64,000 nucleotides of DNA from Dicyema japonicum. Lineage: Eukaryota > Animalia > Dicyemida. Position numbers and translations under genes: made by a program. The stretch is from the NCBI GenBank assembly GCA_011109175.1, contig RDEW01000069.1, forward strand, positions 102,184 through 166,183. Reading direction: 5' to 3'. Below are positions 5,983 to 61,092 of this stretch, piece by piece. The notes under the pieces are model-generated. The model saw only the letters and a list, made by a program, of their open reading frames with translations, made no database searches and had not been told where the DNA came from. The first letter of the stretch is position 1. Each line of letters opens with the position of its first letter.

Positions 5983-6354
5983 TTAATTTACTCGTTACTA
6001 TTATTTTATTCCATGAGTTATATTATTAAAAACTAAGTATTTTGATACTGCATCCATTCTTCAATTTTACTTTTTTTCAAAAAATAAATAAAAGTGATTA
6101 TTTTAAAATAAAAAATATATATTTGTAATCCTTTTTCATTAACGAACAAAAATATATAATTATTTATTTAAATGATTAAAATCATTGACCATGTGAGGCC
6201 ACGTACGGGCCATATTATTTAAATAATTATTAAGGCCAGATTATTTTACAAAAGTAATGTTAATAATTTAGTTGAAATTATATCCTTTTTTATTAACAAC
6301 AACACCTTTTCCACGAGCAATTTAGTGTTTGAAGTTCTCCAACACACTCTAGAT

Positions 6355-6990
6355 CAGGGATTCTCAACGGCGGCCCCCCAGGATTTTGGTGCGGCCCGCT
6401 TAAAATTATAAAAAAAATATTACATATTTTACATAATGCAGCCAGATTTTAACTGTGGTTTTTCTTTCTGTTTGTTTCGTACAATAAACTTTTTATGGTT
6501 AAAATTTTTTTACATATTTTAACTATTGTTTTTAAATTAAATATTTTTTGTATTAAATTTTAATTAATATTGTTTCGTACAATAAACTTTTTATGGTTAA
6601 AAATTTTTTACATATTTTAACTATTGTTTTTAAATTAAATATTTTTTGTATTAAATTTTAATTAATATTGCTTGTAATGTCTGGAAAACGTGTTAAAAGT
6701 AGAAAAATTATTCAAGAAAATCGTGCATTTAACCCCGAATGGGAGGAACAATTTTTCGTTATTGAAGAAAATGGCAAAGCACATTGCCTGATTTGTCATT
6801 TTGTTATACGATGTCTTAAGTTATAAAATGTCGAGAGGCATTATATGAAACATTCTTCAGAATATGATTCATTTCAATGTGAATCAAGAAAAATCAAATT
6901 TCTATCTATGAAATCAAATCGCAAACTACAAACCACTTTGTTTAAACAGCCCATGTCATCAAGATCCGCCAAAATAACTTCTTTCAAAAT
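6355..6990 (+). mobile_element. hAT (Buster/SPIN-like) DNA transposon left end with transposase N-terminus
   Basis: End motif CAGGGATTCTCAAC preceded by ctcTAgat; ATG at 6677 gives MSGKRVKSRKIIQENRAFNPEWEEQFF...HCLIC...NVERHY (BED-type zinc finger) with an internal stop. Confidence 0.7.
6472..6670. repeat. Two-copy tandem duplication, ~98 bp period
   Basis: Near-identical direct repeat starting TTGTTTCGTACAATAAAC. Confidence 0.9.
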
Positions 6991-7289
6991 TGTTGGAACC
7001 AGATATTATCCTCAATGATAATAAAAAAAGTACTATTAGTCAAAAACCATCCAGTGTAGTTCCCACTAAATGGCACTTTCATAATTTCTAAGCATTGATG
7101 AATGCTAGCAATGCTGGGATTATCTGAATTTATTCATTATGTATATTTCTATGTTTTTCTGGTTAAATTGCACTATGTTTTATATATATTCCTTACCGAT
7201 TTCTTTGTTCATTGTGGAAACTTTTAATCGCAGAGGATATAAAAAACCTTACAAAAAACACAACTGGCATGTGAATACAAAATCCCTGT

Positions 7290-7883
7290 ATGCTGTCTAC
7301 AATAGACAAAAAAGACCTTACAATTTACGAAACAGTTTGGGAATTCCACATTGTTTCCCTCTCATTTGCCTGCCGACATTATTGTCTAGGAAATGTTGTC
7401 CAAAAGAATCCAAATGAATTGAAATATTTGAATTCATGTCCTGAGAACGATAAGTTATTTCAAGATTCAAGTTTACATCGTATTTCGGAAGTAGTACAGA
7501 AGGACATTTTTTACATCGAATTAACGCGTGAAGATGTTGAAATAAAGGACGTTGTTAATATGATTCGAGTTTATCCAAATTTATCAAATATTACAATAAG
7601 AAGAATTTTTCATACAAAAAGAATCCTTTACTTTCTATTTCCCCGATTGCGTTATGATGACCCAGATTTGCTACATTATCTATTTATGACTGGATTTAGA
7701 AAACTAAGTCGTCTCAAACTCCTTGCACAAAATAAGTCTATGACTATTTATAAAAGTACATTAAAAATAATTGAAAAACTGGAACGCATAGATTTTCACA
7801 ACGTCTTAGTTACCAATTTTTCTGAATTTACTGAAGGCATTAATAATCCAGAGTCTTTAAGGTGGATTTTGTATCAAATCTAG
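7290..7883 (+). CDS. Hypothetical protein
   Basis: 197-codon open frame in AT-rich DNA; no recognised motif. Confidence 0.25.
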   Translation: MLSTIDKKDLTIYETVWEFHIVSLSFACRHYCLGNVVQKNPNELKYLNSCPENDKLFQDSSLHRISEVVQKDIFYIELTREDVEIKDVVNMIRVYPNLSNITIRRIFHTKRILYFLFPRLRYDDPDLLHYLFMTGFRKLSRLKLLAQNKSMTIYKSTLKIIEKLERIDFHNVLVTNFSEFTEGINNPESLRWILYQI

Positions 7884-8407
7884 ATATTTTATACATACAA
7901 GTGATGGAAAACTAAAAAAATACGACTGTAATTTTTTTTCACTTTTTAAAAAAGCCAAAAATCTTACTTGCGCGAATTTTTCTGGATATTTTATTAAAAG
8001 AAAAATACTAAAAAACTTAACCAAGTAATTTACTTTAATAATTTTAGACTAGTCATAAAAATTGGATTTAAAAAATTTCACCATAATGAAATTTTACATT
8101 TCAGTAAAAATATAAGTGATTCTGTATATTTTATAAAAGAATGTAGAATGATCCGCAATCAATTATAAATAACCTTGTCTCGTTTATACAACATTTCGAT
8201 AATAAAATAAAACTATTTACCTATGTTATGCGAAAGATTAATTATGTTCATTTTAAAATTAAAAATAAATTATTAAACCCATTTTTTAAAGTATTCTAAA
8301 ATATAAATTTAGTTTATACGTCGGTACATGCATTTTAATATAGATTTCAGTACAACTCTATACAACAAAATAAAAACCAAGCGATTCCACACTCTACCAT
8401 TTGGTAT

Positions 8408-8685
8408 CATATATCTCATCCATAGCTTTATTTTTGAAATTTTTCTTGAGATGATCAGTTATGACTATAACACTCCGTATCACACTATAATATCTTATTT
8501 TTAGACTTTAATTCGGTTTTTAGTCTATTTTAAACCGTGGAATATCCATATATCTCATCCATAGCTTTATTTTTGAAATTTTTCTTGAGATGATCAGTTA
8601 TGACTATAACACTCCGTATCACACTATAATATCTTATTTTTAGACTTTAATTCGGTTTTTAGTCTATTTTAAACCGTGGAATATC
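8408..8685. repeat. Two-copy tandem duplication, 139 bp period
   Basis: Direct repeat starting CATATATCTCATCC at 8408 and 8547. Confidence 0.9.
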
Positions 8686-8845
8686 TCAATTTTTGTTTGT
8701 TAATTCTTATTTTAGCTTCTTGCACTGTCAGTTATGTTAATAAAACTTCATTACGCATATAAATTTGTTCAGCCTGATTGTAACTTAATAATGAAAAATA
8801 TGAGTATCAATCTTATAGCTTATGTTGGCTATTCTGAAGGACTTG

Positions 8846-9229
8846 TCAAAGTTCATATTCACTCGAATTTGAAAAGAGCAAGCTCTTGAAATTGGTAACG
8901 GATTTCGATGTCCCGAATCTTTGGTTAAAAGCATTCGTAATCAGAGGCCAACCACCACGGGGCATTCTCTTAAATCTGGATTTTGTAGCTTCAACTACTT
9001 CCACAGCCCATTGTCTCTTGTCCACAGTGTGAACTTTGTCGACTACGCATTGCAGTGAGAGAAGATGTTCTTTAAGATCAGTATTGACAACTTTTTGGGT
9101 CTTGGACAAGTCATCGACCACATTCTCTACGTTTCTTTTGTTTTTTCTTTTAGTAACTTTCGTAGATAGGTCGATTGAAACATCTTTTCTTCTTTTCTTA
9201 CAAGAAACAGCCATGCCCACAACAACCAA
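8846..9229 (-). mobile_element. Fragment of an unclassified repeat family (probable retroelement ORF N-terminus)
   Basis: DLSTKVTKRKNKRNVENVVDD..GGWPLITNAFNQRF recurs, diverged, at ~10950-11640 (+) and ~10490-10590 (+). Confidence 0.45.
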
Positions 9230-9716
9230 AAAATTAATTCAAAGTTCATATTACAATATAATTTTATATATTTTGTTAGACGAAAATGAAGATTTTTTTA
9301 GATTATAATGGAATTTATTATATTTATTATTTTTTCGAAAGATATTGCATATCTCGACCTGATCTAGAATTTATATTAATTCCAATCATTTACATCGTAG
9401 AAATTATAGCTAAATGTTCAAACTCCAGACATTTAATATGGACGGTCTAATAAATTTAATATTGTAAAAATTTTTTTATTTAAAAGAGACATGGAATTAC
9501 CTGAATATTATCATCATATAACCTTTTTCGTTTTTAGATGTATCTGCCATATATTAAGAGACCCAAATGATATTTCCCTTATATTTATGAATTCTACTCA
9601 TAGCGATTTGAATCCACGTGAGCTTATACTAAATAAAATTGTTCAGTTTATAAAAAATCATTCTACTGATGTCGAAGATTATTTCAATAGGTTGATATTT
9701 CATAAGTTCTATCTTA

Positions 9717-10023
9717 AGGTCAATGAAATCCACAGTAAATTTATTGGATGCAAACACAGATGAACGAATTTGGCTTTGGGCTGTGTGGGAATGTGCTAAT
9801 TTATTTAGGAGATATGGTTATTCCTTATTTTTATAATAGCACGTAGACATGTGGGCATGCTTATTTCTCAGGTCAATGAAATCCACGGTAAGTTTATTGG
9901 ATGCAAACACAGATGAACGAATTTGGCTTTGGGCTGTGTGGGAATGTGCTAATTTAATTAGGAGATATGGTTATTCCTTATTTTTATAATAGCACGTAGA
10001 CATGTGAGCATGCTTATTTCTCA
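9717..10023. repeat. Two-copy tandem duplication, 153 bp period
   Basis: AGGTCAATGAAATCCAC at 9717 and 9870. Confidence 0.9.
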
Positions 10024-10643
10024 ACATTCTTATGAAAATTGAAAATATCTGTTTACTATCCAACATGAAAGAGATTCATTATTATGCAGAAATTTTTAGG
10101 ACAAATTATAATGTTGTTATTTTTTTAAATTTAGTATTATATTAATCGACAGTAAAGTTAATTAATATTAATTACTTTATTAATAATATTACTAATAAAT
10201 TAAATATTTGATTTTTGTGACGTGTGTCTGTGTTTCTACTAGCACAAACATTTCCAATGGACCAATCTTCGAAGTACCCAACAGAGAAATCAGTAAAAAC
10301 GTAGATTTTGTGGTTCCTGGTTTGTTCGGAACACAAAATCTGATGTACAACTTCTCAATCTTGTGCCGCTACAAATTTCCATTCCAATCTTCTCTCTTTA
10401 CAGGCAATCAGTTATACACTCAAGTATGTTGACAAACTCAATTGGGTCGTTGATGTAGCCATGGCTGCTCAAAGAAGATTCAACATAATTCCTCATGGAG
10501 GATGGCCGATGATTACACGTGCATATAACAAAAAGATTCCCACTAGTGGTGGATTTGAAGACACTCAAGAAGTTCAATGATTGACTAATATCCTCAATAA
10601 ATAAGAGCAATTGGAAATATGGAATAGAGACAAAACCGAATAA

Positions 10644-10831
10644 GCAACTTACATCATATTGGCCAATTTATGGCTAAAAGTTCACGTCATGGGTTAAAAA
10701 AATCCAATTTTGCTAAGAAATTGGCTAATTCTCAAATGCAACTTATATCATATTGGCCAATTTATGGCTTAAAGTTCACGTCATGGGTTAAAAAAATCCA
10801 ATTTTGCCGAAAAATTGGCTAATTCTCAAAT
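10644..10831. repeat. Two-copy tandem duplication, 94 bp period
   Basis: GCAACTTA.ATCATATTGGCC at 10644 and 10738. Confidence 0.9.
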
Positions 10832-13786: not shown

Positions 13787-14389
13787 TATGCTCACTTATG
13801 GTGCGCACTCCTGGTATTGCAGTGAGGAACGCGAAAAGTGCCTCACCAACTTGAGGAAGGTTCGGCGGCGGGCAATACGGTATTCTATAGGATTGTCTTA
13901 TAGAGCGCCGCTGCCTGAAAGAGGATATCCGGATTTTAAGGACCCGGAGGAAGTAATTAAAAAGATCTTAAAACTAAATTAAAGAAGGAGGTACGGGGAA
14001 GACGAAAGTGATGCCACGAAAACGCTGCCGCAAGGCGGTGAAAGGGTACTTAGTTTGGTTGTAGGAAAAAAAGTCAAGTGGAAAAAAGGTCAAGCGGAAA
14101 AAAAAGTCAAGTCCGTAAGCGGAAAAAAGGTCAAGCGGAAAAAAAAGTCAAGTTGTCTTTTTTTAATTTATATCGCATTTTTGTGATACTACTAGCATCT
14201 TTTAATTTTTAAAAATTTTTTCAATACTTGACTTTTTTTCCGCTTGACTTTTTTTCCCCTTACGGACTTGACTTTTTTTCCGCTTGACCTTTTTTCCGCT
14301 TGACTTTTTTTCCGCACTCCACTTAGTTTAGTTCTTCCCTAATTTCTAACTATTTGTTTTTGCCTAATAAAAATTTTTCCTTCCATTCC
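13787..14389 (+). mobile_element. LINE family A, 5'-truncated 3' fragment ending at an H3 5' UTR (interrupted by a MITE)
   Basis: Matches the ORF2 end (MLTYGAHSWYCSEERE...) and 3' UTR of 40371-44648; tail TTCCTTCCATTCC abuts ATCGATAATTTTCATT upstream of the H3 ATG. Confidence 0.92.
14057..14320. mobile_element. Foldback/Mutator-like MITE, 264 bp, 9-bp TSD ACTTAGTTT
   Basis: Ends GGTTGTAGGAAAAAAAGTCAAG / CTTGACTTTTTTTCCGCACTCC; TSD at 14048-14056 and 14321-14329; TIRs built of (GGAAAAAAAGTCAAG) repeats. Confidence 0.88.
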
Positions 14390-14421
14390 ATCGATAATTT
14401 TCATTCATTCATCGATAAATA

Positions 14422-14547
14422 ATGGCACGAACAAAACAAACTGCTAGAAAATCAACTGGAGCAAAAGTTCCAAGGACGAAAATGGTTCAAAAAGTGAGTA
14501 CCAAAGGATCTAAACGGGCGGCAGTTAAAGTTAGTAGCACAACACGT
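14422..14547 (+). CDS. Chimeric histone head: H3 codons 1-18 + TK + H2B codons 1-22, in frame with family-A ORF1
   Basis: [52 protein letters not shown], read directly from ORF 14422-14961. Confidence 0.93.
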
Positions 14548-15320
14548 TCCATAAGAAGTCTCGACGATTATCAGGACATCTCACGTGTGGTCTGTGACAC
14601 AGCGGCCCACGTGGTGGAAGGACTCTTCATAAATAAGCCCACTATTGGACTATATTTTAGAGGAGTCCGAGGTATCGAGAAGCTCAGGAGAGTCGTTCGC
14701 GACTCGATCCTTCTGTCCTTCAGAGTAAACATGGGGATCGATGGCAGGGCTGCTTTCCACACTGTAGCGGACATCCCCACACAGCTAGCGGTTGATCAAG
14801 CTGTGCCTGCACCGAGGAGGATGGAGGTTGAGAGCAAGACTCAGCCTCCTGTAATGGATCCAAGGACCGAGGAAAACATCCCAGCACAGCTAGCGTTGAA
14901 CAAGCTGTGCCTGGGACGAAAAGGATGGAGGTTGAGAGCAAGACTCAGCCTCTTGAAATGAATCAAGGACCGAGAACCGAGGGCAGGGCTGAATCCGTCA
15001 CACAGCCAGCGGTCCAACAGGCTGTGCCTGCCCTCGACGAAGGAAGACAAGAAGACCGTCTCCCGATGACTGTAGGCTGGACTACAGTAGGGAGAAAGAG
15101 GAAGTCTGCGGTTTCTGCCAAACCGCAGAACGTGCGTGATTCGGGTCCAGAAACCGCAAAGTGCCCTAAAAAGCATTTTGCAGGCTCGAATCAATCCAGA
15201 GCGCACGTGCCTAAAGAGAAGAACAAACAACAGGTATTCGGGGGACTAACTACACTAGTTCGGCTAGAGGTGCCGAAGATAGGAGTGGTTAAACTCCTAT
15301 GTGGCATAGGTACTCTGGCT

Positions 15321-16791
15321 GGTTGTAGGAAAAAAAGTCAAGTGGAAAAAAGGTCAAGCGGAAAAAAAAGTCAAGTCCGTAAGCGAAAAAAAGTCAAGCG
15401 GAAAAAAAGTCAAGTTGTCTTTTTTTAGTTTATATCGCATTTTTGTGATACTACTAGCATCTTTTAATTTTTAAAAATTTTTTCAATACTTGACTTTTTT
15501 TCCGCTTGACTTTTTTTCCATTTTTGAAAATTTTTCCTTATAAATTTTCGAAATTTAGCGCAAAATGGAAAAAAAGTCAAGTCCGCTAACGAAATTACGG
15601 ACTTGACTTTTTTCCGCTTTGGTATAATCGCTTTGACTAAATCAATTTAAGAACTTCAAGGTAATAATAAAAAAAATATTTTTTATTATAAAATGAATAA
15701 AAATTAAATTAGGGCATCTGAATGGCCATGCTATTTCCCCTAACAATAGCCAACGAGATACGTTCTCGGAACCAACTAGTCTCTCGCAGATCCTTGGTCA
15801 CAGCTTGAATCATGGAGCCGATCTTACGAACCAACTCATCTGCTTGGGGGCCAAGGATTCATAATATAATAAAATTGACTTAACTTTTTTCGCTTTGGTT
15901 TAATCTTTTTGACCTTGACTTTTTTCGCTTTGGTTTAATCTTTTTGACTTAATCAATATACGGATTTTAATTCCTTTGGAAAAAGAATTTCAACAAGAAC
16001 AAATAAAAAACGATTGATACAAAAAAAAAACTTTTAAATATATTTCTGGATCGCCAGGACGGAAAAAAACAGTAGGAGAGGCCCTAAAACCAATTGCATG
16101 GAATATTAAATATTCTTTTGATTCACATTAAATAATCCCTTGATTCACGTTAAATAAAAATCATATGTTTATTTTTTTTAAAGCCTTTTCATGAGAGCCA
16201 TAGTATTTTATAGCTCCGCATAGGCAGGACACACACTTTATTTAAGTAAAGAACAGTTAATTTTAACTAATCGTAGAACCAAGGAATTATCTTCACTTCT
16301 TTTTTTCTTTTTCTTGTGTGAGTGTCCTTTCTAGACAATTTAGTTAAAAGTAGAAAAAATCATTTTTAGAATTTATTTCCACCACGTGTAGTTTTAGTTG
16401 TGGCGAGACATTGTAATTCATTAACATTAGCCAAAATTAACTATTTAAATAATTTGTTATTCTAAACTCGCTTACTTTAAAATGAAACGATCATGAATAA
16501 AAATCTTAATTTATAAACGGAAAAAAAGTCAAGTCCGTAATTTCGTTAACGGACTTAACTTTTTTTCCGTTTTGCGCTAAATTTCGAAAATTTATAAGGG
16601 AAAAATTTTCAAAAATGGAAAAAAAGTCAAGCGGAAAAAAAGTAAAGTATTGAAAAAATTTTTAAAAATTAAAAGATGCTAGTAGTATCACAAAAATGCG
16701 ATATAAACTAAAAAAAGACAACTTGACTTTTTTTCCGCTTGACTTTTTTTCCGCTTGACCTTTTTTCCCCTTGACTTTTTTTCCGCACTCC
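15321..16791. mobile_element. Foldback/Mutator-like non-autonomous DNA transposon, 1471 bp, 9-bp TSD ACTCTGGCT
   Basis: Same termini as 14057-14320; long imperfect repetitive TIRs; TSD at 15312-15320 and 16792-16800. Confidence 0.9.
15680..15861 (-). mobile_element. 5'-truncated CRE-clade element nested in the MULE
   Basis: Reverse strand reads GILGPQADELVRKIGSMIQAVTKDLRETSWFRERISLAIVRGNSMAIQMP*; matches 2915-2960. Confidence 0.8.
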
Positions 16792-19316
16792 ACTCTGGCT
16801 ACCTATGCGAAAGGAAGGATCGTCAGACGAGGAGAATCCCACTTGTTGGTGGGATTCAGAAATGACGTGGACGCCTCAGCTTTTGAAGCTGAGGTGAATA
16901 AGAAGGTTCCTTTTGGGCCCGGGGCACATAACATGTCTCGGGTCATCCCCAAGGTACACGACTCGATTGTACTAGTCTTCGGAGTCCCTCTGGACTTTGT
17001 TGATGAGGATGTACTCGAGTACATCAAAAAGGACTACCCCACGGCGCACAAGATCGAGCGCTTCAAGAGTGGGAGTCAGAGACTAAGGACTCTCAAGGTC
17101 TGGATCAGGTCCGGAGCAGAAGCTGAGAGGATCTGCCTTGAGAAGTTAAAGATAGGTTACTTTAGATTTGGTGTGGCCCGAGAGCGACCGGTAGCAATCC
17201 AGTGCTACAGATGCCAGGGATTCGGCCACACCAGCTCCCGCTGCACTTATAAAGAGAAGTGCCTAAATTGCGGGGGTCCACATTCACGGAAGGCCTGTCA
17301 ATCCAGAGTCAGGTCTCTCAAGTGCGTGAACTGTGGCTTGGAGGGACACAGGGCGAGCCATACCAAGTGCCCCCTGTATCAGGAGGCGACGGAGAAGGTA
17401 CCACAGGGGAGAAGGCAGGCGCCCTCCTCTGGAGTGGTCAGTGATGTAAGCGCTGTCCACCGCGTGGTAAGTCGATACTGTAGCAGCACAGGTTCAACGT
17501 TCCCTAATGCGCTTAGGGACATTGCGCTCTGCGATAGGAAGGTAAGTGCGGCGAAGTGATGTTACGCATCATTTCAGTTAATGTTAGGTCCCTCCGGAGA
17601 AGAAGGAAGGCCATCGAGGATCTTCTGGACTCTTTGGAGGTGGACATCTTGGTCCTTAACGAGACCAAGAGTAAGGATACGGCTGCTGCAGGCTTTAAAG
17701 GCTATACTAGTTGTCATCTCTTGTGGAATGACACACATAGAGGTTCGGGCACTAGTATCTATTGGAGGACGAGTCTAGCAGCAGTCGTCCAAGGTATTTC
17801 AAATTGTCCTCATTGCGAGTTAATATTATTACGAATCAGATTATCTAGCTTTAGCGTTGTTATAGGGGCAATGTATGCCAAGCAGTTGTGGTTGTGTAAG
17901 GACCACATTAAAACTGTATTTGACATTCATCCCCATTGCGTTATTTTTGGTGATCTGAATGCTAAGCATTCAGATTTTGGCTGTTTTGTTAATAATAGGG
18001 CTGGATCAGCACTCCGGGAATTAGCTTGGAATCTTGGGCTCTCAGTCACTACATCGACGGACCCCAATCACAAAGATACACGAGGAGGAGAGGACTTCTT
18101 GGGTATGGCCGTAGCCTCCCCTTCATTAATTGGTATGCTCTCTGTACCTCGTGTTCTTAGGGACATCGGAAGCGATCACCGTCCCCTACTCACCGAGCTT
18201 CACGAACCTGTTCGACCTCAGGCCCCAATTGGCTATGACTTGGGCTCTGGCACTTGGGATAACCTGGAGTCGTTCATGGATAGAAAACTCCCTTCTCTCA
18301 AAGGGCAAGTTTGTAGTGAAGCGGACGTGGAGGAATTGGATGCCACCCTGGGTGGTATCCTCGAGGAATACATGCGGACTAACTTCCGGTTACGTCCGCA
18401 AGGTGGAGGCTCCGCACGAATTCCAGGCCTGATTTTAAGTAAGATAACACTTAGAAAGAGGTACCTGCGGTTCAAAGCGAGGAGCACGTATGAAGAGAAC
18501 CGGATCTTCTACCAGAAGAAGGTAACACCTTACGAAGGGAAATCCGGAAGGCGCTCGTCGACTATCAGAGCAACAAATGGAGGAGGGCCTGCGAGAGGGT
18601 GAACCCCGCATGGCCGGACTTCTAAGATAATCCAATCCTTTTCGCCTAATTGAAAATGTTTTTCGAGACGCAATGTCGTTTTAAATTGTTAATTCACGGG
18701 AATTTCTAATCATATGCAGTTTCTATCAACTAGCTAAAAATACCTTTAGCCCATAAAACCCAACTTTAATGTAACAAACTAACCAAATAAATCTCAAGTA
18801 CAAAAATAAGACAAATTTTTAATTTTGACACTGTTTAAAAAACAAAAAAACTATATCATTTTCTTTTAATGTAACAAATTTTTAATTTTTGACACTGTTT
18901 AAAAAACAAAAAAACTATTTCAATTTGATTTTAATATAAAAAATTAAATAAATCGCTGTCGAAAAAATTGGGGTCAAAAATCCAGGTTTTTGCGGCTGAT
19001 TGAACTCAAACCAAGTTCATTCAACGCGTCTTGCTTTTGCGCGTTAAAATATGAAATCAGATTGAAAATTGGACGCACGTGGGCGGAGATTTGATAATTG
19101 ATTATTTTTTAGTTTTTAGAAATTAAATTTGTCTATTATTCTTGTTTATGTAAGCCTTGTTAACCTTTAACTAAATTATTTATTTTTTTGATTACCTAAA
19201 TGCTACATTCTAAGATAGTTCTAGATATTGACTTAGTCAGCTAGGCTTACAGTTGGTTAGTAATAATGTAACTTTTTTTTCAAAATAACTCTTGTAAGTG
19301 ACTGATTATTGTATTT

Positions 19317-20184: not shown

Positions 20185-22956
20185 AAATCAAATCAAATCA
20201 AATTTATTCCAAAGTAAGTAAGGAGTCAATTAAAGGGATTTTAACGTGTCCGCCTTTGCGGCCTGGACACTTCACACGTATCCCATCTCCATTGTAGTCG
20301 TCCATTTAGTACGTATTGAGAAGCTGGTTTCCCAACCTTACTTCGATATCTATTTTACCGGCCTGACAAGGCTATTCTCTTCCTCGGAGAGGCTTTCATG
20401 TAATTTCCTCCCCAGAGATATTTTTATCGCCGCTCGCCTTGTTTTCTCCAGGCGAGCGAGAATCCTTTCTCTCGAGGGAGTATAATACCATCCCTCGCAT
20501 CCATATATCAGTCTTGGGAGAATCACAGTTTGGAAGATATAGAGCATTGTATCGGCGTCCAGCATAAGTTTTCTGGAGCAGAACATCGCTTGAACGGCCT
20601 TCTTTCTCCGCTCCTCGATGTCCTTCCGGTACGATCCTCTTCCATCCACTGCAATCCCCAGGTATTTCAGGCTAGAGACTCTCGGTATCCGTAGCGTATA
20701 CATCTCTCTCTGGTGTCGATCCAGCCTGCATATTCGCAAGTAACTGGATTTTTCTGTGGATAGTTTCATCCCTCTCCTATCGCACCATGTCCGAACTCTG
20801 TCGACAAAAGCCCCGATTCGTCGCTCAGAGATGTAGGCCTTCAGAGATGAGTCTAGGATTAAGATGTCATCCGCATAAATCATCAGCTTGGTCCTAACGT
20901 TTTGTGGAGAAGGAAAATCTTCCATAAATACGTTGAATAATAGAGGGCTTAGAATAGACCCTGCGGCACTCCCTTTTAAACAATATATCTTCGGAATATC
21001 TTCCACCAACCACCACGTTTGATATTCCTCCCAGTCAACAGGTTCTTCAGCCATAGGAACATTTGTCTTGAATTTTTGATCGAACCAGTTGACAGAATAG
21101 GCCTCGTGCCATACACTGTCGAAAGCCTTAGATGTCAAGGCAGACAAGGCTCAACTGGCTCCTCTTCTCAAAAGCATTTGCAATCTCATAGTTTAGAGAG
21201 TAATGCAATTACCACACGATCTCCCTGGCCGAAAACCCCATTGGTAACACTGTAGAAAATTAATATTTTCTATGTACTGGTTCAATTTCTTGAAAATAAT
21301 CCGTTCCATAATCTTCGATGTAGAACAGATAAGGCTTATAGGCCTATAACTAAGAGGATCTTTCCTCGACTTTCCAGGTTTAGGAATCATCTTTACAATT
21401 GAGTGCTTCCATAGTGAAGGGGAATGTCCGAGCTTGAAACTTGCGTTATACATCTTTTGTAGAACAGACAGAAATTCATCGGATCCTTCTTTAAACATAG
21501 TCATCGGAATGCTATCAAAACCAGGAGCCTTGTTTTTGCACTCCCGTATAGCAGTCTTGACTTCTGCCAATGTGATTTCCTCTACCATACTATTCAGATC
21601 GTCTATGGAGTAATCCATAGAGCTAGATATATCTTCTGAGAATTTTTCGGATATAATACTGACTGGGTCTACTCCCTGTATGTTTTCTAATTGTTTCCTG
21701 AATACTGACGGTACTCTGTCCAGGGGAATTGTTCTTCCATCTTGATCCGCCAGTACAATGTTCTTTGCTCTCATGTTTTTGTTAGTCAGTCTGGAGTACA
21801 ATTTCCACAAGCAAGGATTCTTAAGTGCACTTTCAAGGCTGCTTTCCTAACTTGGTTTTCTGAATACTACTTCCAAGCTCTCTGTAGAACTTTTTGGATA
21901 GCATCAATATTATTTTTCAAAGTTATACTGTCCCACATGTCCACACATCGTCTGTGCTTCGCCTTCAGAGTATTCCTCTCGCGAATAAGTCCCGAATAGA
22001 AGGAGGGCAGGACTGATTCGTTTTCGGAAGGATTTTTGAGTAAATCTTCTTTGCATATAATCGCAGATACATCGTAATAGTATTGGATAAATCTTGGTTG
22101 AAAGAATCCAACTCATTATGTGTAGAAAAGGAATAATTAATCTTCATTAACATACTCTTCGATAAATAATGACGATAATGTTCCCAGTCTACCGACGAGG
22201 TATCATAATACAGAAAAATGTCTTCAATAATATCCGGTTCAAGATTTATAGTCATCTCCATAGGGATATGGTCACTCCCTATATCCCAGAGTAACCTTGG
22301 CCTGTTTACATGGTCTAGTAGTTGTGGAGATACTAAGGCCAATCCCAGCATATCACCCCCGTAGTATGAGAAATGGTTAGGTTCTTCGGTCGTTAAGACT
22401 TCGACTCCAATTTCCCCGACCAAATCTGCTAGTAGTTGACCGTCCCTGTTGTTTCCATAACATCCATAGGTCCTGTTCTTGGCGTTCAAATATCCCACCA
22501 GGATCGACATTGGGTTTCTTTCGAAGAACTCGACAATTTTCACAGAGGACCAGGCCAAGTCCTTAGAATATAGCCCTCCCACGGTTATCCACGTTCCACC
22601 ACATTGCACGTCGACAGACACGAATTCCGAATCGTCGGCCGATATAATGCAGTCGTTTCGAGTTTGCAATAGTTTATGAAAGAAGATTGAGGTTCCTGTT
22701 CCAGCAACTGCTCCATCTTTCCATGGAATGTCCACTGAGTCATATCCTTCCAGAATATAATGCCTTCCTTCTCGAATCTTCGTCTCGTTGACTACCAAGA
22801 CATCTGCCTTGGCAGTCCTCATAAGTAGTGCTAGTTCATCATGCCTTTTCACCAAGGAGCGAGCATTCACCAGCACTAACTTTAGGATTCTTTTCAGATT
22901 TCTTTTTGGTGGCCCGGGCTCTCCATGGCCAGGTCCACCATTTCCCGTAAATCCAC
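20185..22956 (-). mobile_element. LINE family B (APE-RT), 5'-truncated and degenerate, inserted ~15 nt upstream of the H2A ATG
   Basis: APE (LVNARSL, VVNETK, IGSDHIP), RT (YRPISL, QWGFRPGRSC, KAFDSVWH, ILSPLLFN, YADD); 3' end AATAAA + (TTTGA)4; same orientation as H2A; ~36 bp of target deleted. Confidence 0.9.
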
Positions 22957-23072
22957 TCCGGAAAAAAACTTTTAGAATTAGCATAAGAAAATCAATACTT
23001 TCTAAAGTTTATTCTGGAAGCACAATTTGAAAACATAAGTACGAAAAAATTCAAAATTTTCGATTTCAGAAA

Positions 23073-27187: not shown

Positions 27188-27261
27188 ATGTCAGGACGTG
27201 GTAAAGGTGGAAAAGGAGGAAAGTCAGTGCAAAGCGATTTAAAAAGATCCTGATCGATAAC
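27188..27261 (+). CDS. H4 head (codons 1-25) fused to family-A ORF1
   Basis: ...GATAAC|GTAAGAAGTTTGGAC; in frame once the single G missing in TCAG(G)TGCA is restored. Confidence 0.85.
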
Positions 27262-28878
27262 GTAAGAAGTTTGGACGATTATGAGGACATCTCACGTGTG
27301 GTCTGCGACACAGCGGCCCACGTGGTACAAGGACTCTTCGAAAATAAGCCCTCTATTGGATTATATTTTAGAGGAGTCCGAGGAGTCGAGAAGCTCAGAA
27401 GGGTCGTTCGCGACTCGATCCTTCTGTCGTTCAGAGTCAATATGGGGATCGATGGCAGGGCTGCTTTCCACACTGCAGCGGACATCCCCACACAGCAAGC
27501 GGTTGATCAAGCTGTGCCTGCACCGAGGAGGATGGAGGTTGAGAGCAAGACTCAGCCTCTTGAAATGAATCAAGGACCGAGAACCGAGGGCAGGGCTGAA
27601 TCCGTCACACAGCCGCGGTCCAACAGGCTGTGCCTGCCCTCGACGAAGGAAGACAAGAGGACCGTCTCCCAATGACTGTAGGCTGGACTACAGTAGGGAG
27701 AAAGAGGAAGTCTGCGGTTTCTGCCAAACCGCAGAACGTGCGTGATTCGGGTCCAGAAACCGCAAAGTGCCCTAAAAAGCATTTTGCAGGCTCGAATCAA
27801 TCCAGAGCGCACGTGCCGAAAGAAAAGAAGAAAGAACAGGTATTCGGAGGACTAACTACACTAGTTCGGCTAGAGGTGCCGAAGATGGGAGTGGTTAAAC
27901 TCCTAAGTGGCATAGGTACTCTGGCTACCTATGCGAAAGGAAGGATCGTCAGACGAGGAGAATCCCACTTGTTGGTGGGATTCAGAAATGACGTGGACGC
28001 CTCAGCTTTTGAAGCTGAGGTGAATAAGAAGGTTCCTTTTGGGCCCGGGGCACATAACATGTCTCGGGTCATCCCCAAGGTACACGACTCGATTGTACTA
28101 GTCTTCGGAGTCCTCTGGACTTTGTTGATGAGGATGTACTCGAGTACATCAAAAAGGACTACCCCACGGCGCACAAGATCGAGCGCTTCAAGAGTGGGAG
28201 TCAGAGATTAAGGACTCTCAAGGTCTGGATCAGGTCCGGAGCAGAAGCTGAAAGGATCTGCCTTGAGAAGTTAAAGATAGGTTACTTTAGATTTGGTGTG
28301 GCCCGAGAGCGACCGGTAGCAATCCAGTGCTACAGATGCCAGGGATTCGGCCACACCAGCTCCCGCTGCACTTAATAAAGAGAAGTGCCTAAATTGCGGG
28401 GGTCCACATTCGCGGAAGGCTTGCCAAACAAGTGGCAAGTCTCTCAAGTGCGTGAACTGTGGCGCAAAAGGACACAGGGCGAGCCATACCAAGTGCCCCC
28501 TGTATCAGGAGGCGACGGAGAAGGTACCACAGGGGAGAAGGCAGGCGCCCTCCTCTGGAATGGTCAGTGATGTAGGCACTATCCATCGGATGGTGAGTAA
28601 CTATTGCAATGCCACTGGGGCTTCGCTCCAAACGGCACTTAGGGATATCGCGTTATCTCATAGGTTAAATAATGCGTCGAAGGGATGCTCAACATCGTCT
28701 TCGAAACAGGAGGACTTTAGAATATGACGAAGACTTTTATAAAACGAAGGAGGCACGGGGAAGACGAATGTGATGGCACGAAAACGCTGCCGCAAGGCGG
28801 TGAAAGGGCCTTTAGTTAGTTCTTCCCTAACTTAACATTTGTTTTTTTGCCTAATAAAGATTTTTCCGTTTTTCTTCC
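27262..28878 (+). mobile_element. LINE family A, ORF1-only short form, in H4
   Basis: ORF1 ends ..SKQEDFRI*, then the shared 3' UTR, AATAAA and TTCC tail; H4 restarts at 28879. Confidence 0.92.
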
Positions 28879-32442: not shown

Positions 32443-32532
32443 ATGTCTGGACGTGGTAAAGGTGGAAAAGGAGGAAAGTCAGGTGCAAAGCGATTCAAAA
32501 AGATCCTGATCGATAACATTCAGGGATCACAA
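32443..32532 (+). CDS. H4 head (~30 codons) fused to family-A ORF1
   Basis: Junction ATCACAA|CACATTCCGTACGA as at 47666; in frame after restoring one G in CAGG(G)GATC. Confidence 0.85.
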
Positions 32533-34267
32533 CACATTCCGTACGAAATCTTGAGGATTATCAGGACATCTCACGTGTGGTCTGTGATACAGCGGCCCAC
32601 GTGGTACAAGGACTCTTCGAAAAATAAGCCCTCTATTGGATTATATTTTAGAGGAGTCCGAGGAGTAGAGAAGCTCAGAAGGGTCGTTCGCGACTCGATC
32701 CTTCTGTCGTTCAGAGTCAATATGGGGATCGATGGCAGGGCTGCTTTCCACACTGCAGCGGACATCCCACACAGCAAGCGGTTGATCAAGCTGTGCCTGC
32801 ACCAAGGAGGATGGAGGTTGAGAGCAAGACTCAGCCTCCTGTAATGGATCAAAGGACCGAGGAAAAACATCCCAGCAAAGCTAGCGGTGAACAAGCTGTG
32901 CCTGGGACAAGGAGGATGGAGGTTGAGGGCAAGACTCAGCCTCTTGAAATGAATCAAGGACGAGAACCGAGGGCAAGGGCTGAATCCGTCACACAGCCAA
33001 GCGGTCCAAACAGGCTGTGCCTGCCCTCGACGAAGTGCGACAAGAGGACCATCTCCCAATGACTGTAGGCTGGACTACAGTAGGGAGAAAGAGGAAGTCT
33101 GCGGTTTCTGCCAAACCGCAGAACGTGCGTGATTCGGGTCCAGAAAACCGCAAAGTGCCCTAAAAGCATTTTTGCAGGCTCGAATCAATCCAGAGCGCAC
33201 GTGCCGAAAGAAAAGAAGAAAGAACAGGTATTCGGAGGACTAACTACACTAGTTCGGCTAGAGGTGCCGAAGATGGGAGTGGTTAAACTCCTAAGTGGCA
33301 TAGGTACTCTGGCTACCTATGCGAAAGAAGGATCGTCAGACGAGGAGAATCCCACTTGTTGGTGGGATTCAGAAATGACGTGGACGCCTCAGCTTTTGAA
33401 GCTGAGGTGAATAAGAAGGTTCCTTTTGGGCCCGGGGCACATAACATGTCTCGGGTCATCCCCAAGGTACACGACTCGATTGTACTAGTCTTCCGGAGTC
33501 CCTCTGGACTTTGTTGATGAGGATGTACTCGGAGTACATCAAAAGGACTACCCCACGGCGCACAAGATCGAGCGCTTCAAGAGTGGAGTCAGAGACTAAG
33601 GACTCTCAAGGTCTGGATCAGGTCCGGAGCGGAAGCTGAGAGGATCTGCCTTGAGAAGTTTAAGATAGGTTACTTTAGATTTGGTGTGGCCCGAGAGCGA
33701 CCGGTAGCAATCCAGTGCTACAGATGCCAGGGATTCGGCCACACCAGCTCCCGCTGCACTTATAAAGAGAAGTGCCTAAATTGCGGGGTCCACATTCGCG
33801 AAGGCTTGCCAAACAAGTGGCAAGTCTCTTCAAGTGCGTGAACTGTGGCGCAGAAGGACACAGGGCGAGCCATACCAAGTGCCCCCCTGTATCAGGAGGC
33901 GACGGAGAAGGTACCACAGGGGAGAAGGCAGGCGCCCTCCTCTGGAATGGCCAGTGATGTAGGCACTATCCATCGGATGGTGAGTAACTATTGCAATGCC
34001 ACTGGGGCTTCGCTCCAAACGGCACTTAGGGATATCGCGTTTATCTCATAGGTTAAATAATGCGTCGAAGGGATGCTCAACAATCGTCTTCGAAACAGGA
34101 GGACTTTAGAATATGACGAAGACTTTTATAAAACGAAGGAGGCACGGGGAAGACGAATGTGATGGCACGAAACGCTGCCGCAAGGCGGTGAAAGGGCCTT
34201 TAGTTAGTTCTTCCCTGATTACTTAACATTTGTTTTTTGCCTAATAAAGATTTTTCCGTTCCGATCC
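32533..34267 (+). mobile_element. LINE family A, ORF1-only short form, in H4
   Basis: Same structure as 27262-28878; tail TTCCGTTCCGATCC. Confidence 0.92.
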
Positions 34268-36636: not shown

Positions 36637-36999
36637 TTAAGTGGATGCTGGTTTTGCGGGCTCAGCACTTTTGCGACAGATGTATCTTCCGCAAGAGATT
36701 ATTGCATTTTGGGTAAGTTCTTTTAATTCGTCATCGGCATTGATTGCGACAGACAGGTGACAAGGTTTGATCCTTCGCTTTGCAGCCTTGAGTGCAGTAT
36801 TACCACAAAGTTCCAGCACTTCAGCACATAGATACTCCATTACAGCTCCAACGTAGATGGCAGCACCAACTGCAACTCGCATTCTGGTCTCACTTCTCAA
36901 GCATCTATGAATTCGACCAACTGGAAATTGCAAGCCTGCTCTAACTGATTTGCTTTTCGCTTTTGTACGTACTTTTCCACCTTTGCCGCGAGTAGACAT
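36637..36999 (-). CDS. H2A: Histone H2A
   Basis: Identical protein. Confidence 0.97.
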   Translation of the reverse strand: MSTRGKGGKVRTKAKSKSVRAGLQFPVGRIHRCLRSETRMRVAVGAAIYVGAVMEYLCAEVLELCGNTALKAAKRRIKPCHLSVAINADDELKELTQNAIISCGRYICRKSAEPAKPAST

Positions 37000-37161
37000 T
37001 TTATTGAAAATTTTGAATTTTTTCGTACTTATGTTTTTAAATTGTGCTTCCGGAAAAAACTTTTAAATTAGCATAAGAAAATCAATACTTTCTAAAGTTT
37101 ATTCTGGAAGCACAATTTGAAAACATAAGTACGAAAAAATTCAAAATTTTTGATTTAGACT

Positions 37162-38460: not shown

Positions 38461-38541
38461 AAATTTTTGATTTAGACTATGGTTCAAAAAGTTAGCACTA
38501 AAGGATCTAAACGGGCTGCAGTTAAAGTTAGTAGCACAACA
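38461..38541 (+). other. Ectopic H2B 5' UTR plus first 21 codons placed just after the H3 TATA-like box
   Basis: ...TATTAATACA|AAATTTTTGATTTAGACTATGGTTCAAAAAG matches H2B at 37143-37220. Confidence 0.92.
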
Positions 38542-40302
38542 AGTTCCGTAAGAAGTTTGGACGATTACCAGGACATCTCACGTGTGGTCTGTGATACAGC
38601 GGCCCACGTGGTAAATGGACTCTTCGAAAATAAGCCCTCTATTGGATTATATTTTAGAGGAGTCCGAGGAGTCGAGAAGCTCAGAAGGGTCGTTCGCGAC
38701 TCGATCCTTCTGTCGTTCAGAGTCAATATGGGGATCGATGGCAGGGCTGCTTTCCACGCTGCAGCGGACATCCCCACACAGCAAGCGGTTGATCAAGCTG
38801 TGCCTGCACCGAGGAGGATGGAGGTTGAGAGCAAGACTCAGCCTCCTATAATGGATCAAGGGACATGGAAAAAGACCAGGCCTACTTCATACACATCAGA
38901 GGACATCCCCACACAGCAAGCGGTTGAACAAGCTGTGCCTGCACCGAGGAGGATGGAGGTTGAGAGCAAGACTCAGCCTCTTGAAATGAATCAAGGACCG
39001 AGAACCGAGGGCAGGGCTGAATCCGTCACACAGCCAGCGGTCCAACAGGCTGTGCCTGCCCTCGACGAAGTGCGACAAGAGGACCATCTCCCAATGACTG
39101 TAGGCTGGACTACAGTAGGGAGAAAGAGGAAGTCTGCGGTTTCTGCCAAACCGCAGAACGTGCGTGATTCGGGTCCAGAAACCGCAAAGTGCCCTAAAAA
39201 GCATTTTGCAGGCTCGAATCAATCCAGAGCGCACGTGCCGAAAGAAAAGAAGAAAGAACAGGTATTCGGAGGACTAACTACACTAGTTCGGCTAGAGGTG
39301 CCGAAGATGGGAGTGGTTAAACTCCTAAGTGGCATAGGTACACTGGCTACCTATGCGAAAGGAAGGATCGTCAGACGAGGAGAATCCCACTTGTTGGTGG
39401 GATTCAGAAATGACGTGGACGCCTCAGCTTTTGAAGCTGAGGTGAATAAGAAGGTTCCTTTTGGGCCCGGGGCACATAACATGTCTCGGGTCATCCCCAA
39501 GGTACACGACTCGATTGTACTAGTCTTCGGAGTCCCTCTGGACTTTGTTGATGAGGATGTACTCGAGTACATCAAAAAGGACTACCCACGGCGCACAAGA
39601 TCGAGCGCTTCAAGAGTGGGAGTCAGAGACTAAGGACTCTCAAGGTCTGGATCAGGTCCGGAGCAGAAGCTGAAAGGATCTGCCTTGAGAAGTTAAAGAT
39701 AGGTTACTTTAGATTTGGTGTGGCCCGAGAGCGACCGGTAGCAATCCAGTGCTACAGATGCCAGGGATTCGGCCACACCAGCTCCCGCTGCACTTATAAA
39801 GAGAAGTGCCTAAATTGCGGGGGTCCACATTCGCGGAAGACTTGCCAAACAAGTGGCAAGTCTCTCAAGTGCGTGAACTGTGGCGCGGAGGGACACAGGG
39901 CGAGCCATACCAAGTGCCCCCTGTATCAGGAGGCGACGGAGAAGGTACCACAGGGGAGAAGGCAGGCGCCCTCCTCTGGAGTGGTCAGTGATGTAGGCAC
40001 TATCCATCGGATGGTGAGTAACTATTGCAATGCCACTGGGGCTTCGCTCCAAACGGCACTTAGGGATATAGCGTTATCTCATAGGTTAAATAATGCGTCG
40101 AAGGGATGCTCAACATCGTCTTCGGAACAGGAGGACTTTAGAATATGACGAAGACTTTTATAAAACGAAGGAGGCACGGGGAAGACGAATGTGATGGCAC
40201 GAAAACGCTGCCGCAAGGCGGTGAAAGGGCCTTTAGTTAGTTCTTCCCTGATTACTTAACATTTGTTTTTTTGCCTAATAAAGATTTTTCCGTTCCGTTC
40301 CG
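38542..40302 (+). mobile_element. LINE family A, ORF1-only short form, H2B-headed
   Basis: ORF 38479-39633 fused in frame; tail TTCCGTTCCGTTCCG. Confidence 0.92.
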
Positions 40303-40309
40303 TTAGACT

Positions 40310-41938
40310 ATGGTTCAAAAAGTTAGCACAAAAGGATCTAAACGGGCTGCAGTTAAAGTTAGTAGCACAAAAAGTTCCGTAAGAAGTTTGGACGATTACC
40401 AGGACATCTCACGTGTGGTCTGTGATACAGCGGCCCACGTGGTAAATGGACTCTTCGAAAATAAGCCCTCTATTGGATTATATTTTAGAGGAGTCCGAGG
40501 AGTCGAGAAGCTCAGAAGGGTCGTTCGCGACTCGATCCTTCTGTCCTTCCGAATAAACATGGGGATCGATGGCAGGGCTGCTTTCCACGCTGCAGCGGAC
40601 ATCCCCACACAGCAAGCGGTTGATCAAGCTGTGCCTGCACCGAGGAGGATGGAGGTTGAGAGCAAGACTCAGCCTCCTATAATGGATCAAGGGAAATGGA
40701 AAAAGACCAGGCCTACTTCATACACATCAGAGGACATCCCCGCACAGCTAGCGGTTGAACAAGCTGTGCCTGGGACGAGGAGGATGGAGGTTGAGAGCAA
40801 GACTCAGCCTCTTGAAATGAATCAAGGACCGAGAACAGAGGGCAGGGTTGAATCCGTCACACAGCCAGCGGTCCAACAGGCTGTGCCTGCCCTCGACGAA
40901 GGAAAACAAGAGGACCGTCTCCCGATGACTGTAGGCTGGACTACAGTAGGGAGAAAGAGGAAGTCTGCGGTTTCTGCCAAACCGCAGAACGTGCGTGATT
41001 CGGGTCCAGAAACCGCAAAGTGCCCTAAAAAGCATTTTGCAGGCTCGAATCAATCCAGAGCGCACGTGCCGAAAGAAAAGAAGAAAGAACAGGTATTCGG
41101 AGGGCTAACTACACTAGTTCGGCTAGAGGTGCCGAAGATGGGAGTGGTTAAACTCCTAAGTGGCATAAGTAGTCTGGCTACCTATGCGAAAGGAAGGGTC
41201 GTCAGACGAGGAGAATCCCACTTGTTGGTGGGATTCAGAAATGACGTGGACGCCTCAGCTTTTGAAGCTGAGGTGAATAAGAAGGTTCCTTTGGGCCCGG
41301 GGCACATAACATGTCTCGGGGTCATCCCCAAGGTACACGACTCGATTGTACTAGTCTTCGGAGTCCCTCTGGACTTTGTTGATGAGGATGTACTCGAGTA
41401 CATCAAAAAGGACTACCCCACGGCGCACAAGATCGAGCGCTTCAAGAGTGGGAGTCAGAGACTAAGGACTCTCAAGGTCTGGATCAGGTCCGGAGCAGAA
41501 GCTGAGAGGATCTGCCTTGAGAAGTTAAAGATAGGTTACTTTAGATTTGGTGTGGCCCGAGAGCGACCGGTAGCAATCCAGTGCTACAGATGCCAGGGAT
41601 TCGGCCACACCAGCTCCCGCTGCACTTATAAAGAGAAGTGCCTAAATTGCGGGGGTCCACATTCACGGAAGGCCTGTCAATCCAGAGTCAGGTCTCTCAA
41701 GTGCGTGAACTGTGGCTTGGAGGGACACAGGGCGAGCCATACCAAGTGCCCCCTGTATCAGGAGGCGACGGAGAAGGTACCACAGGGGAGAAGGCAGGCG
41801 CCCTCCTCTGGAGTGGTCAGTGATGTAAGCGCTGTCCACCGCGTGGTAAGTCGATACTGTAGCAGCACAGGTTCAACGTTCCCTAATGCGCTTAGGGACA
41901 TTGCGCTCTGCGATAGGAAGGTAAGTGCGGCGAAGTGA
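40310..41938 (+). CDS. H2B-head::ORF1 fusion protein (542 aa, gag-like, three CCHC zinc knuckles)
   Basis: [32 protein letters not shown]...CYRCQGFGHTSSRC, CLNCGGPHSRKAC, CVNCGLEGHRASHTKC. Confidence 0.93.
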   Translation: MVQKVSTKGSKRAAVKVSSTKSSVRSLDDYQDISRVVCDTAAHVVNGLFENKPSIGLYFRGVRGVEKLRRVVRDSILLSFRINMGIDGRAAFHAAADIPTQQAVDQAVPAPRRMEVESKTQPPIMDQGKWKKTRPTSYTSEDIPAQLAVEQAVPGTRRMEVESKTQPLEMNQGPRTEGRVESVTQPAVQQAVPALDEGKQEDRLPMTVGWTTVGRKRKSAVSAKPQNVRDSGPETAKCPKKHFAGSNQSRAHVPKEKKKEQVFGGLTTLVRLEVPKMGVVKLLSGISSLATYAKGRVVRRGESHLLVGFRNDVDASAFEAEVNKKVPLGPGHITCLGVIPKVHDSIVLVFGVPLDFVDEDVLEYIKKDYPTAHKIERFKSGSQRLRTLKVWIRSGAEAERICLEKLKIGYFRFGVARERPVAIQCYRCQGFGHTSSRCTYKEKCLNCGGPHSRKACQSRVRSLKCVNCGLEGHRASHTKCPLYQEATEKVPQGRRQAPSSGVVSDVSAVHRVVSRYCSSTGSTFPNALRDIALCDRKVSAAK

Positions 41939-44519: not shown

Positions 44520-44557
44520 AGAAGGAGGCACGGGGAAGACGAATGGATGCACGAAAA

Positions 44558-44575
44558 CGCTGCCGCAAGGCGGTG
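44558..44575 (+). other. 3' UTR hairpin of family A (CGCTGCC-GCAA-GGCGGTG, GNRA loop)
   Basis: 7-bp stem with two G-U pairs; conserved in nearly all family-A 3' ends. Confidence 0.6.
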
Positions 44576-44675
44576 AAAGGGCCTTAGTTAGTTCTTCCCT
44601 ATTACTTAACATTTGTTTTTTGCCTAATAAAGATTTTTCCTTCCTTTCAATCGATAATTTTCATTTTCATTAATA

Positions 44676-47575: not shown

Positions 47576-47666
47576 ATGTCAGGACGTGGTAAAGGTGGAA
47601 AAGGAGGAAAGTCAGGTGCAAAGCGATTCAAAAAGATCCTGATCGATAACATTCAGGGGATCACAA
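47576..47666 (+). CDS. H4 head (30 codons) fused in frame to family-A ORF1
   Basis: ...[24 protein letters not shown] in ORF 47561-47854. Confidence 0.92.
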
Positions 47667-53019: not shown

Positions 53020-53383
53020 ATGTCTGGACGTGGTAAAGGTGGAAAAGGAGGAAAGTCAGGTGCAAAGCGATTCAAAAAGATCCTGATCGATAACATTCAG
53101 GGGATCACAAGTAACGAAGTTTGGAGATTATCAGGACATCTCACGTGTGGTCTGTGATACAGCGGCCACGTGGTAAAGGACTCTTCGAAAATAAGCCTCT
53201 ATTGGATTATATTTTAGAGGAGTCCGAGGAGTAGAGAAGCTCAGAAGGGTCGTTCGCGACTCGATCCTTCTGTCGTTCAGAGTCAATATGGGGATCGATG
53301 GCAGGGCTGCTTTCCACACTGCAGCGGACATCCCCACACAGCAAGCGGTTGATCAAGCTGTGCCTGCACAGGAGGATGGAGGT
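53020..53383 (+). mobile_element. H4 head (53020-53110) plus 5' end of a family-A copy running into a gap
   Basis: ATCACAA|GTAACGAAGTTTGGAGATTATCAGGAC; low-quality sequence. Confidence 0.85.
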
Positions 53384-60514: not shown

Positions 60515-60840
60515 TTTCTACAACTTTAACCTATATACCTACCACATGGTCCAGTTTATAACTTTGAAAAAATGAACTTTTTGATTATTTTTAGCCGTAC
60601 TGATGAAATGGATCCTTAGAGAAAGATCCTTCTACATTATAATATGAGAAGCTTCAAGATATCCACATAAAGAGAAAATATCGAGACTACATCTTTTTGG
60701 TTGAACTAGCTGATGTGGTTCTTTCACACATATCGATAAGGATTAAAATAATATCTTTATGGAGACAATGATTTGAGTTCATTATGTTATAAATGATTTT
60801 ATCCATAAGAATTATTATTCGTCCTGAGAGAAATAAATAT

Positions 60841-61092
60841 AAGCATTAAAGGAATTGACGAATATGAGGATGTCTCACGCGTGGTTCAGTGACTCTTCTC
60901 AAATAAACCTTCTATTGGAATTTATTTTAGAGATGTCAAAGGCTTGGAAAAACTCAGGCTGGTCGTTCGCGACTCGGTCCTCCTGGCTTTCCGAGTGAAT
61001 ATGGGGATCGATGGCAGGGCTGCTTTTCACACGGGAGCGGACATTTCCCCACAGTCAGCGGTTGAACATGCTGTGCCTGCTACGAGGAGGAA
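60841..61092 (+). mobile_element. Diverged relative of the family-A ORF1 5' region
   Basis: SIKGIDEYEDVSRVV and [22 protein letters not shown] homology with many substitutions. Confidence 0.75.

Follow-up and report, generated by a model that had tools for sequence, protein, structure and literature searches.

In the window analysed here (the whole 64-kb stretch of Dicyema japonicum DNA), one LINE copy, copy Y, opens with the 5' end of an H3 gene, continues with the 5' end of an H2B gene and only then reaches its own ORF1. On balance, the element found in this histone array is best explained, judging from its sequence, as an APE-type LINE without a start codon of its own, living in the 5' ends of tandem histone genes. 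The stack in Y was most probably produced when an H2B-headed LINE RNA was inserted into the 5' region of an H3 gene, placing a second histone head before the first.

The tandem histone array is complete, extends over ~13.8-54.2 kb of the window with unique genes flanking both sides, and repeats a unit of ~5.4 kb comprising H4(+), H3(+), H2A(-) and H2B(+). Its histones are unusually divergent. The H4 of the array matched no Pfam core histone model, only CENP-T_C, and neither the histone 3' stem-loop nor any other Rfam family was found at gathering score across 13800-54200. The H2A-H2B intergenic segments at 36999-37161 and 22957-23072 form a near-palindromic divergent promoter in which the block GGAAGCACAATTTGAAAACATAAGTACGAAAAAATTCAAAATTTT faces each gene. 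A second, different LINE with APE and RT ORFs lies in an H2A leader at 20185-22956 on the minus strand, in H2A orientation, and its ORF carries no histone head.

One LINE family has invaded this array, and self-BLAST placed all of its copies there (8/8) in the orientation of H3, H4 and H2B. ORF1 of copy B encodes three CCHC knuckles, and its ORF2 contains an APE domain (PF03372, E 1e-13; PF14529, E 9e-10) and an RT domain (PF00078, E 1.4e-40). The tail ends in AATAAAGATTTTTCC followed by NTTCC repeats. The family has no terminal repeats and includes 5'-truncated copies (X begins at nt 2392 of ORF2, c57 at nt 1337 of ORF1), as well as a short ORF1-only derivative represented by copies A, c27, c32 and c47. 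Across all copies (e.g. 40310-41940), ORF1 diverges by 5-10% over the first 880 nt and is nearly identical over the next ~400 nt. A young 5'-truncated copy at 57640-60514, 98% identical to B and with a tail that breaks off at 62/129, lies outside the histone array; insertion is thus not confined to histone genes and targeting is not strict. Also outside the array, an old fragment at 60800-61100, 80% identical, begins at the ORF1-body boundary TCCATAAGAA with an in-frame ATGATTTTA just upstream and no histone sequence there, and may be a headless or differently headed ancestor.

Copy Y and the copy preceding it are composed of the following parts:

13787-14389, plus strand: copy X, 5'-truncated, with the end of ORF2 and the 3' tail (NTTCC repeats), adjoining the H3 leader.
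14390-14421, plus strand: H3 leader of 32 nt, matching the 32-38 nt before every H3 ATG of the array apart from a small length variant.
14422-14475, plus strand: H3 codons 1-18, the outer head (14422-14476 being identical to H3 at 55/55 positions).
14476-14481, plus strand: linker ACGAAA, two codons (TK), between the H3 and H2B parts.
14482-14547, plus strand: H2B codons 1-22, the inner head, of the G/T/G allele class, with 3/66 mismatches to the nearest resident allele.
14548-18623, plus strand: body of Y, with ORF1 and the first 1065 nt of ORF2, its end joined to position 84 of the H3-H2A spacer.

Translation runs from the H3 ATG through the H2B ATG into ORF1 in one frame of 179 codons, and the stack described in an earlier note, H3 leader, 18 codons, ACGAAA, 22 H2B codons and ORF1 without a change of frame, was confirmed in both coordinates and content. 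The first nucleotide of the H3 leader of Y, before ATCGATAATTTTC, is also the one at which an intact H3 gene takes over from the tail of copy B at 44649. The GAAA of the linker equals the leader of the H2B allele at 23073; the first A of the linker may derive from H3 (AAGGA), and its C or AC may be filler. Y occupies the slot of the array where an H3 gene is expected and is followed by the H3-H2A spacer; having lost its 3' half together with the 3' junction, Y no longer shows where it was inserted. Neither a protein word search with the stacked ORF nor an alignment search with ORF1 found relatives, and exact-protein look-ups of the stacked ORF, ORF1 of B and H3 returned no record.

A 1.47-kb hAT-like TIR element interrupts Y at 15321-16792 with an 8-bp duplication (CTCTGGCT), and a short TIR/foldback element splits X at 14056-14321, where public-run contigs skip 14046-14328. 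Both belong to a TIR/foldback family of GGAAAAAAAGTCAAG-type repeats, with its long copy in Y and its short copy in the tail of X; the long copy has the highest summed public-run contig depth of the stretch compared. The divergence of Y from B, 6-10% over the first 880 nt followed by ~99.5% identity, had raised the suspicion of a chimeric assembly, an idea that was dropped because all copies show the same contrast and the duplication at the TIR insertion is clean.

The H2B leader and first 22 codons head three copies: A, behind the TATA-like box of H3; B, behind the tail of A; and Y, inside H3. A and B carry their H2B heads into an H3 promoter with no H2B gene around, thus H2B heads travel with the element. 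The length of the H2B leader varies (-18/-20 in A, -7 in B, -4/-6 in Y), a pattern that a single RNA with variable 5' ends would be expected to leave. At head positions 15/18/39, Y has G, T and G with the leader gaaaATG, like the H2B genes at 23073 and 26555; A and B have T, C and T with the leader agactATG, like the H2B genes at 31780 and 37162. These two head classes match two resident H2B allele classes, indicating that H2B sequence was acquired or exchanged more than once. The element would formerly have resided in an H2B gene; none of the 6 H2B genes of this array carries it.

The other headed copies were catalogued within the 64-kb window and are as follows:

27188-28867, plus strand: copy c27, the element joined at GTAAGAAG behind H4 nt 1-75, with 1 nt of overlap.
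32443-34262, plus strand: copy c32, H4 nt 1-91, CACAT remnant at 32533-32537 and short-form element, CACAA overlap at 32528-32532.
38461-40300, plus strand: copy A, short ORF1-only form whose H2B head (leader -18/-20 to +66) follows the H3 TATA-like box directly.
40303-44648, plus strand: copy B, full-length with H2B head (leader -7), the head following the tail of A and its own tail meeting H3 at -27.
47576-49399, plus strand: copy c47, with the same H4(+91)::CACAT junction as c32, in frame, overlap at 47662-47666.
53020-53383, plus strand: copy c53, H4 nt 1-91 joined to GTAACGAAG, out of frame, decayed and running into an N gap.

Their 5' junctions, together with those of Y, fall into five types:

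H2B(+66)::TCC, in A, B and inner Y: in frame, overlap not applicable.
H3(+55)::ACGAAA::H2B, in Y: in frame, 0-1 nt overlap with 1-2 filler letters.
H4(+91)::CACAT::TCC, in c32 and c47: in frame, 5 nt overlap.
H4(+75)::GTAAGAAG, in c27: in frame until a 1-nt deletion arose in the head, 1 nt overlap.
H4(+91)::GTAACGAAG, in c53: out of frame, 0 nt overlap.

The full-length copies B and Y share an identical H2B/element boundary, ACACGT|TCC, and the outer junctions of A (H3 promoter/H2B leader) and B (tail of A/H2B leader at -7) overlap by 2 nt each. Entry into histone coding sequence occurs at H3 +55 and at H4 +75 and +91. On the 3' side, H3 -27/-32 represents one site used by both X and B, and H4 was reached at -11, -12 and -59. 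Insertion in this LINE family is thus not at one defined nucleotide of one multicopy target. Every H4 insertion is followed by a complete H4 gene, starting from -11 behind c27, from -12 behind c32 and from -59 behind c47, and H4 segments of 86-150 nt, not short ones, thus stand on both sides of the element; A plus B come with a target deletion of ~12 nt. The duplicated segment of c47 reaches from -59 to +91 and spans the TATA-like box, indicating that at least the c47 head came from target DNA. The head of c27 and its downstream H4 share one private T. With this exception, H4 heads resemble their downstream twins no more than they resemble other alleles. Target duplication is hence not proven, and the allele matching could also have come from gene conversion within the array.

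The H4-type junctions at 32528-32540 and 47662-47674 read ATCACAA-CACAT-TCC where the H2B-headed copies have AGCACAACACGT-TCC, and the alignment of c32 and c47 with the H2B-headed copies begins at CACAACAC[A/G]T. As had been claimed, these junctions contain a 5-nt CACAA overlap in the same codon phase and an H2B-like CACAT remnant, which matches at 4/5 positions, the difference being a CpG to CpA change (P ~0.016). Nesting of an older head inside a newer one is therefore supported in two apparent forms, H2B inside H3 in Y and the 5-nt H2B remnant inside H4 in c32 and c47. As in 5' transduction, host sequence that flanked a source copy on its 5' side was found to head copies at other loci, in the H2B heads of A, B and Y as well as in the composite head of a related element described below.

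The earlier note had further proposed that heads are swapped by microhomology and that this explains why the reading frame is kept. For its one junction the CACAA overlap exceeds chance: over all possible joints of H4 nt 10-150 with an H2B-headed 5' end, P(overlap >=5 nt) = 0.0098. As a general joining rule microhomology fails, since among six or seven junctions no overlap other than CACAA is long, the rest having 0-2 nt. Nor did the clustering of in-frame microhomologies between H4 and the head appear: the two share 22 words of at least 5 nt, 10 of which are in frame (binomial P ~0.16), and the longest, of 9 and 8 nt, are out of frame and unused. Microhomology thus does not account for the kept frame. 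Of the five distinct junction types in the window, four keep the frame (binomial P ~0.045), a small sample which suggests that only translatable fusions spread; selection for translatable fusions, or chance, would explain the kept frame better than microhomology does.

The best RT relatives of the LINE are 30-37% identical and carry the source-given label 'mobile element jockey'. The closest RT relative in the protein database, at 54% identity, and the sole close relative in the RT search, lies on a contig filed under Octopus sinensis (GCA_006345805.1, contig VCDQ01012037.1), where positions 6227-10800 hold a LINE related to the window family (locus L001). Its ORF1 is 31% identical to that of the window over a 229-residue BLASTP alignment, its ORF2, in two pieces, is 42% and 55% identical, and its 3' tail is similar. 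ORF1 of this element starts with H3 residues 1-28 in the dicyemid-specific form (74/84 nt match the H3 of the window) and continues in frame with ALRRLCRSGGV, which corresponds to residues 33-43 of the window H4 at 9/11 positions, including the unusual Cys (E 3e-4; 0/300 shuffles reached 9/11). There is no other histone gene within 10 kb of the element, so the composite head travelled with it. By its sequence, then, a two-histone head exists in a second LINE family, as an H4 remnant inside an H3 head, and multi-head junctions other than that of Y therefore occur. The element has no flanking duplication of at least 8 nt; its flanks are without the CACGTG excess reported for dicyemid DNA, and a FAM200/ZBED5-type hAT-like ORF is found there. 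The locus is either a parasite-to-host transfer or a dicyemid contaminant contig. A broader scheme, in which dicyemid LINEs of this group, lacking both promoter and start codon themselves, are obligate users of histone 5' ends, pass in turn through H2B, H3 and H4 genes, have the head rebuilt or replaced at each insertion and so keep a nested record of hosts, and in which one of them with dicyemid-type H3/H4 now sits in octopus-assembled DNA, its stamps marking a parasite-to-host transfer, is offered as a speculation that we consider improbable as a whole.

For Y itself, we propose that the full-length element RNA would start with the H2B leader and first 22 codons and would have been reverse-transcribed into the H3 5' region, where the bottom strand was probably nicked in the leader at the recurrent site, directly ahead of ATCGATAA. 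End-joining would then have linked the end of the cDNA to the top strand of H3 at nt 55 of the coding sequence, with an overlap of 0-1 nt and 1-2 letters added, to give H3(18 codons)::TK::H2B(22 codons)::ORF1, the older head within the newer. H4 insertions would likewise start by reverse transcription from a nick at a recurrent site in the H4 leader, the cDNA being joined some tens of nt downstream. A head that matches the target might pair with it, rebuild the old junction and take the allele of the target, as the 28S tags of R1/R2 do; a head that does not match would have to form a new junction by end-joining, and heads would then stack or get trimmed. H4(+91) joined at CACAA would fit trimming that left two H2B codons. 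The single 5' junction of c32 and c47, combined with two 3' junctions (-12 and -59), fits a head carried on the RNA and re-annealed, while array rearrangement could also give both. We infer the order of events at Y, the homology-guided rebuilding and the selection for in-frame fusions from these patterns.

The proposal that the lineage hops between histone types thus stands in part: the 5' ends of several histone types are occupied, heads nest and H2B heads move. The stack may record two successive hosts, but Y has lost its 3' junction, and an RT that jumped onto H3 mRNA would leave an identical sequence. Such a template switch is the best of the alternatives, though we consider it unlikely. 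The RT would leave the end of the H2B-headed RNA, add one or two letters, jump to nt 55 of an H3 mRNA and copy it to its 5' end, and the chimera would integrate behind the tail of X, H3 being an RNA partner and not a host locus. The H3 piece indeed starts ~20 nt after the TATA-like TATTAATA box, near the expected (inferred) transcription start, and directly abuts an element tail like the head of B; extra letters at the joint are typical of template jumps, non-templated additions are on record (PMC2718515), and LINE-1 forms same-orientation chimeras with other RNAs (bioRxiv 10.1101/2025.02.02.635956). However, the start of the H3 piece is also the recurrent 3' junction site, where a nick explains it equally well, and the duplicated H4 of c47 extends to -59 and takes in the TATA-like box, which an mRNA is not expected to carry. 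The 5' partner in c47 is therefore not transcribed sequence only, and at least H4 heads would be DNA-derived.

Rather less probable is a rearrangement of array DNA without any retrotransposition from host to host, in which H3 nt 55 came to adjoin the leader of an element-bearing H2B gene (+66) lying downstream, through a deletion or an unequal exchange. Rearrangements are frequent in tandem arrays, Y already has a large deletion (from 18623 to spacer position 84), and its inner head matches the nearest H2B allele, that at 23073. But this course requires two large deletions plus an element-bearing H2B gene, of which the array has none among six, the linker ACGAAA is not an exact counterpart of the H2B leader CAGAAA, and H2B heads move without H2B genes in A and B, as does the composite head of the octopus-filed element far from histone genes. 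Slightly weaker again is a single ancient capture, in which the H2B head is a fixed part of the element, the stack records the H3 host alone and later gene conversion produced the allele matches. The boundary ACACGT|TCC common to B and Y agrees with it, and so does the resemblance of each head to its nearest H2B allele, as local conversion predicts; against it, leaders vary in length and with the alleles (gaaaATG versus agactATG), and the old 80% fragment at 60800-61100 has no H2B sequence before the TCC boundary at which it, too, begins.

Public-run contigs at 14476-14480 show ordinary H3 and H2B continuations with loose ends at 14478 and 14480, those on 14478 onward run upstream into an ordinary 23073-type H2B leader, and no short public-run contig among the pieces listed bridges the H3/H2B joint at 14476-14482, which leaves the assembly as its sole witness; among the public runs no RNA run containing the stretch turned up. 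A false join between repeats in this highly repetitive region, which has an N gap elsewhere, is nevertheless very improbable, as Y has its own substitutions (6-10% over the first 880 nt), runs cleanly across the TIR insertion with its 8-bp duplication, and such a join would have needed to fall, by coincidence, immediately ahead of the H2B ATG without breaking the frame.

The proposed insertion of an H2B-headed RNA into H3 has its nearest parallels in R1 and R2, whose RNAs can retain 28S sequence from upstream; this pairs with the target to prime the second strand, and the resulting 5' junctions are uniform; untagged RNAs produce variable junctions with chance microhomology or added letters, and D. 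melanogaster-type R1 has junctions with a TSD and a duplicated upstream tag (PMC3774820, PMC2718515). Like R1/R2, the Dicyema LINE appears to make its home in a tandem multicopy gene family and to rely on host transcription. Unlike theirs, its tag codes for protein and opens ORF1 in frame, three or more types of Pol II histone gene serve as its targets instead of one rRNA site, its 3' junctions lie at several positions, tags from different genes pile up, and no ribozyme is known. 5' transduction by L1 moves host 5'-end sequence in sense and can give a promoter to a 5'-damaged element (bioRxiv 10.1101/2025.02.02.635956). These transductions and first-exon chimeras resemble the Dicyema LINE in carrying upstream host sequence to new loci in sense orientation, but they are sporadic and L1 has its own 5' UTR and start codon, whereas every full-length Dicyema LINE copy seen appears to use a histone start codon, with in-frame fusions and serially nested heads. 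In U6/LINE-1 template-switch chimeras the partners are usually non-coding RNAs without frame relation, whereas the c47 segment has promoter DNA. With Jockey/CR1-like APE-type LINEs the element has in common the three CCHC knuckles of ORF1 and the APE and RT domains of ORF2, but its tail is a short NTTCC repeat and not poly(A), and it is without its own start codon or 5' UTR; the name jockey comes from the labels of its database hits. The Dicyema genome paper mentions LINE content by abundance only, and no report of a LINE living in histone genes or using histone start codons was found in the literature searched, which does not prove novelty.

Histone genes are the most strongly S-phase-expressed genes of the cell. 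If the proposed reading is true, a retrotransposon has handed promoter and start codon over to histone genes, and the 5' end of the LINE would be a layered record of where its lineage has lived. It would then offer a natural system for the formation of LINE 5' junctions by homology, microhomology or filler, for co-transcribed target tags guiding integration outside rDNA, and for the effects that histone tails fused to the gag-like ORF1 protein may have on nuclear import or targeting. Host-specific heads could also mark the origin of elements in other genomes, possibly including the octopus-labelled contig.
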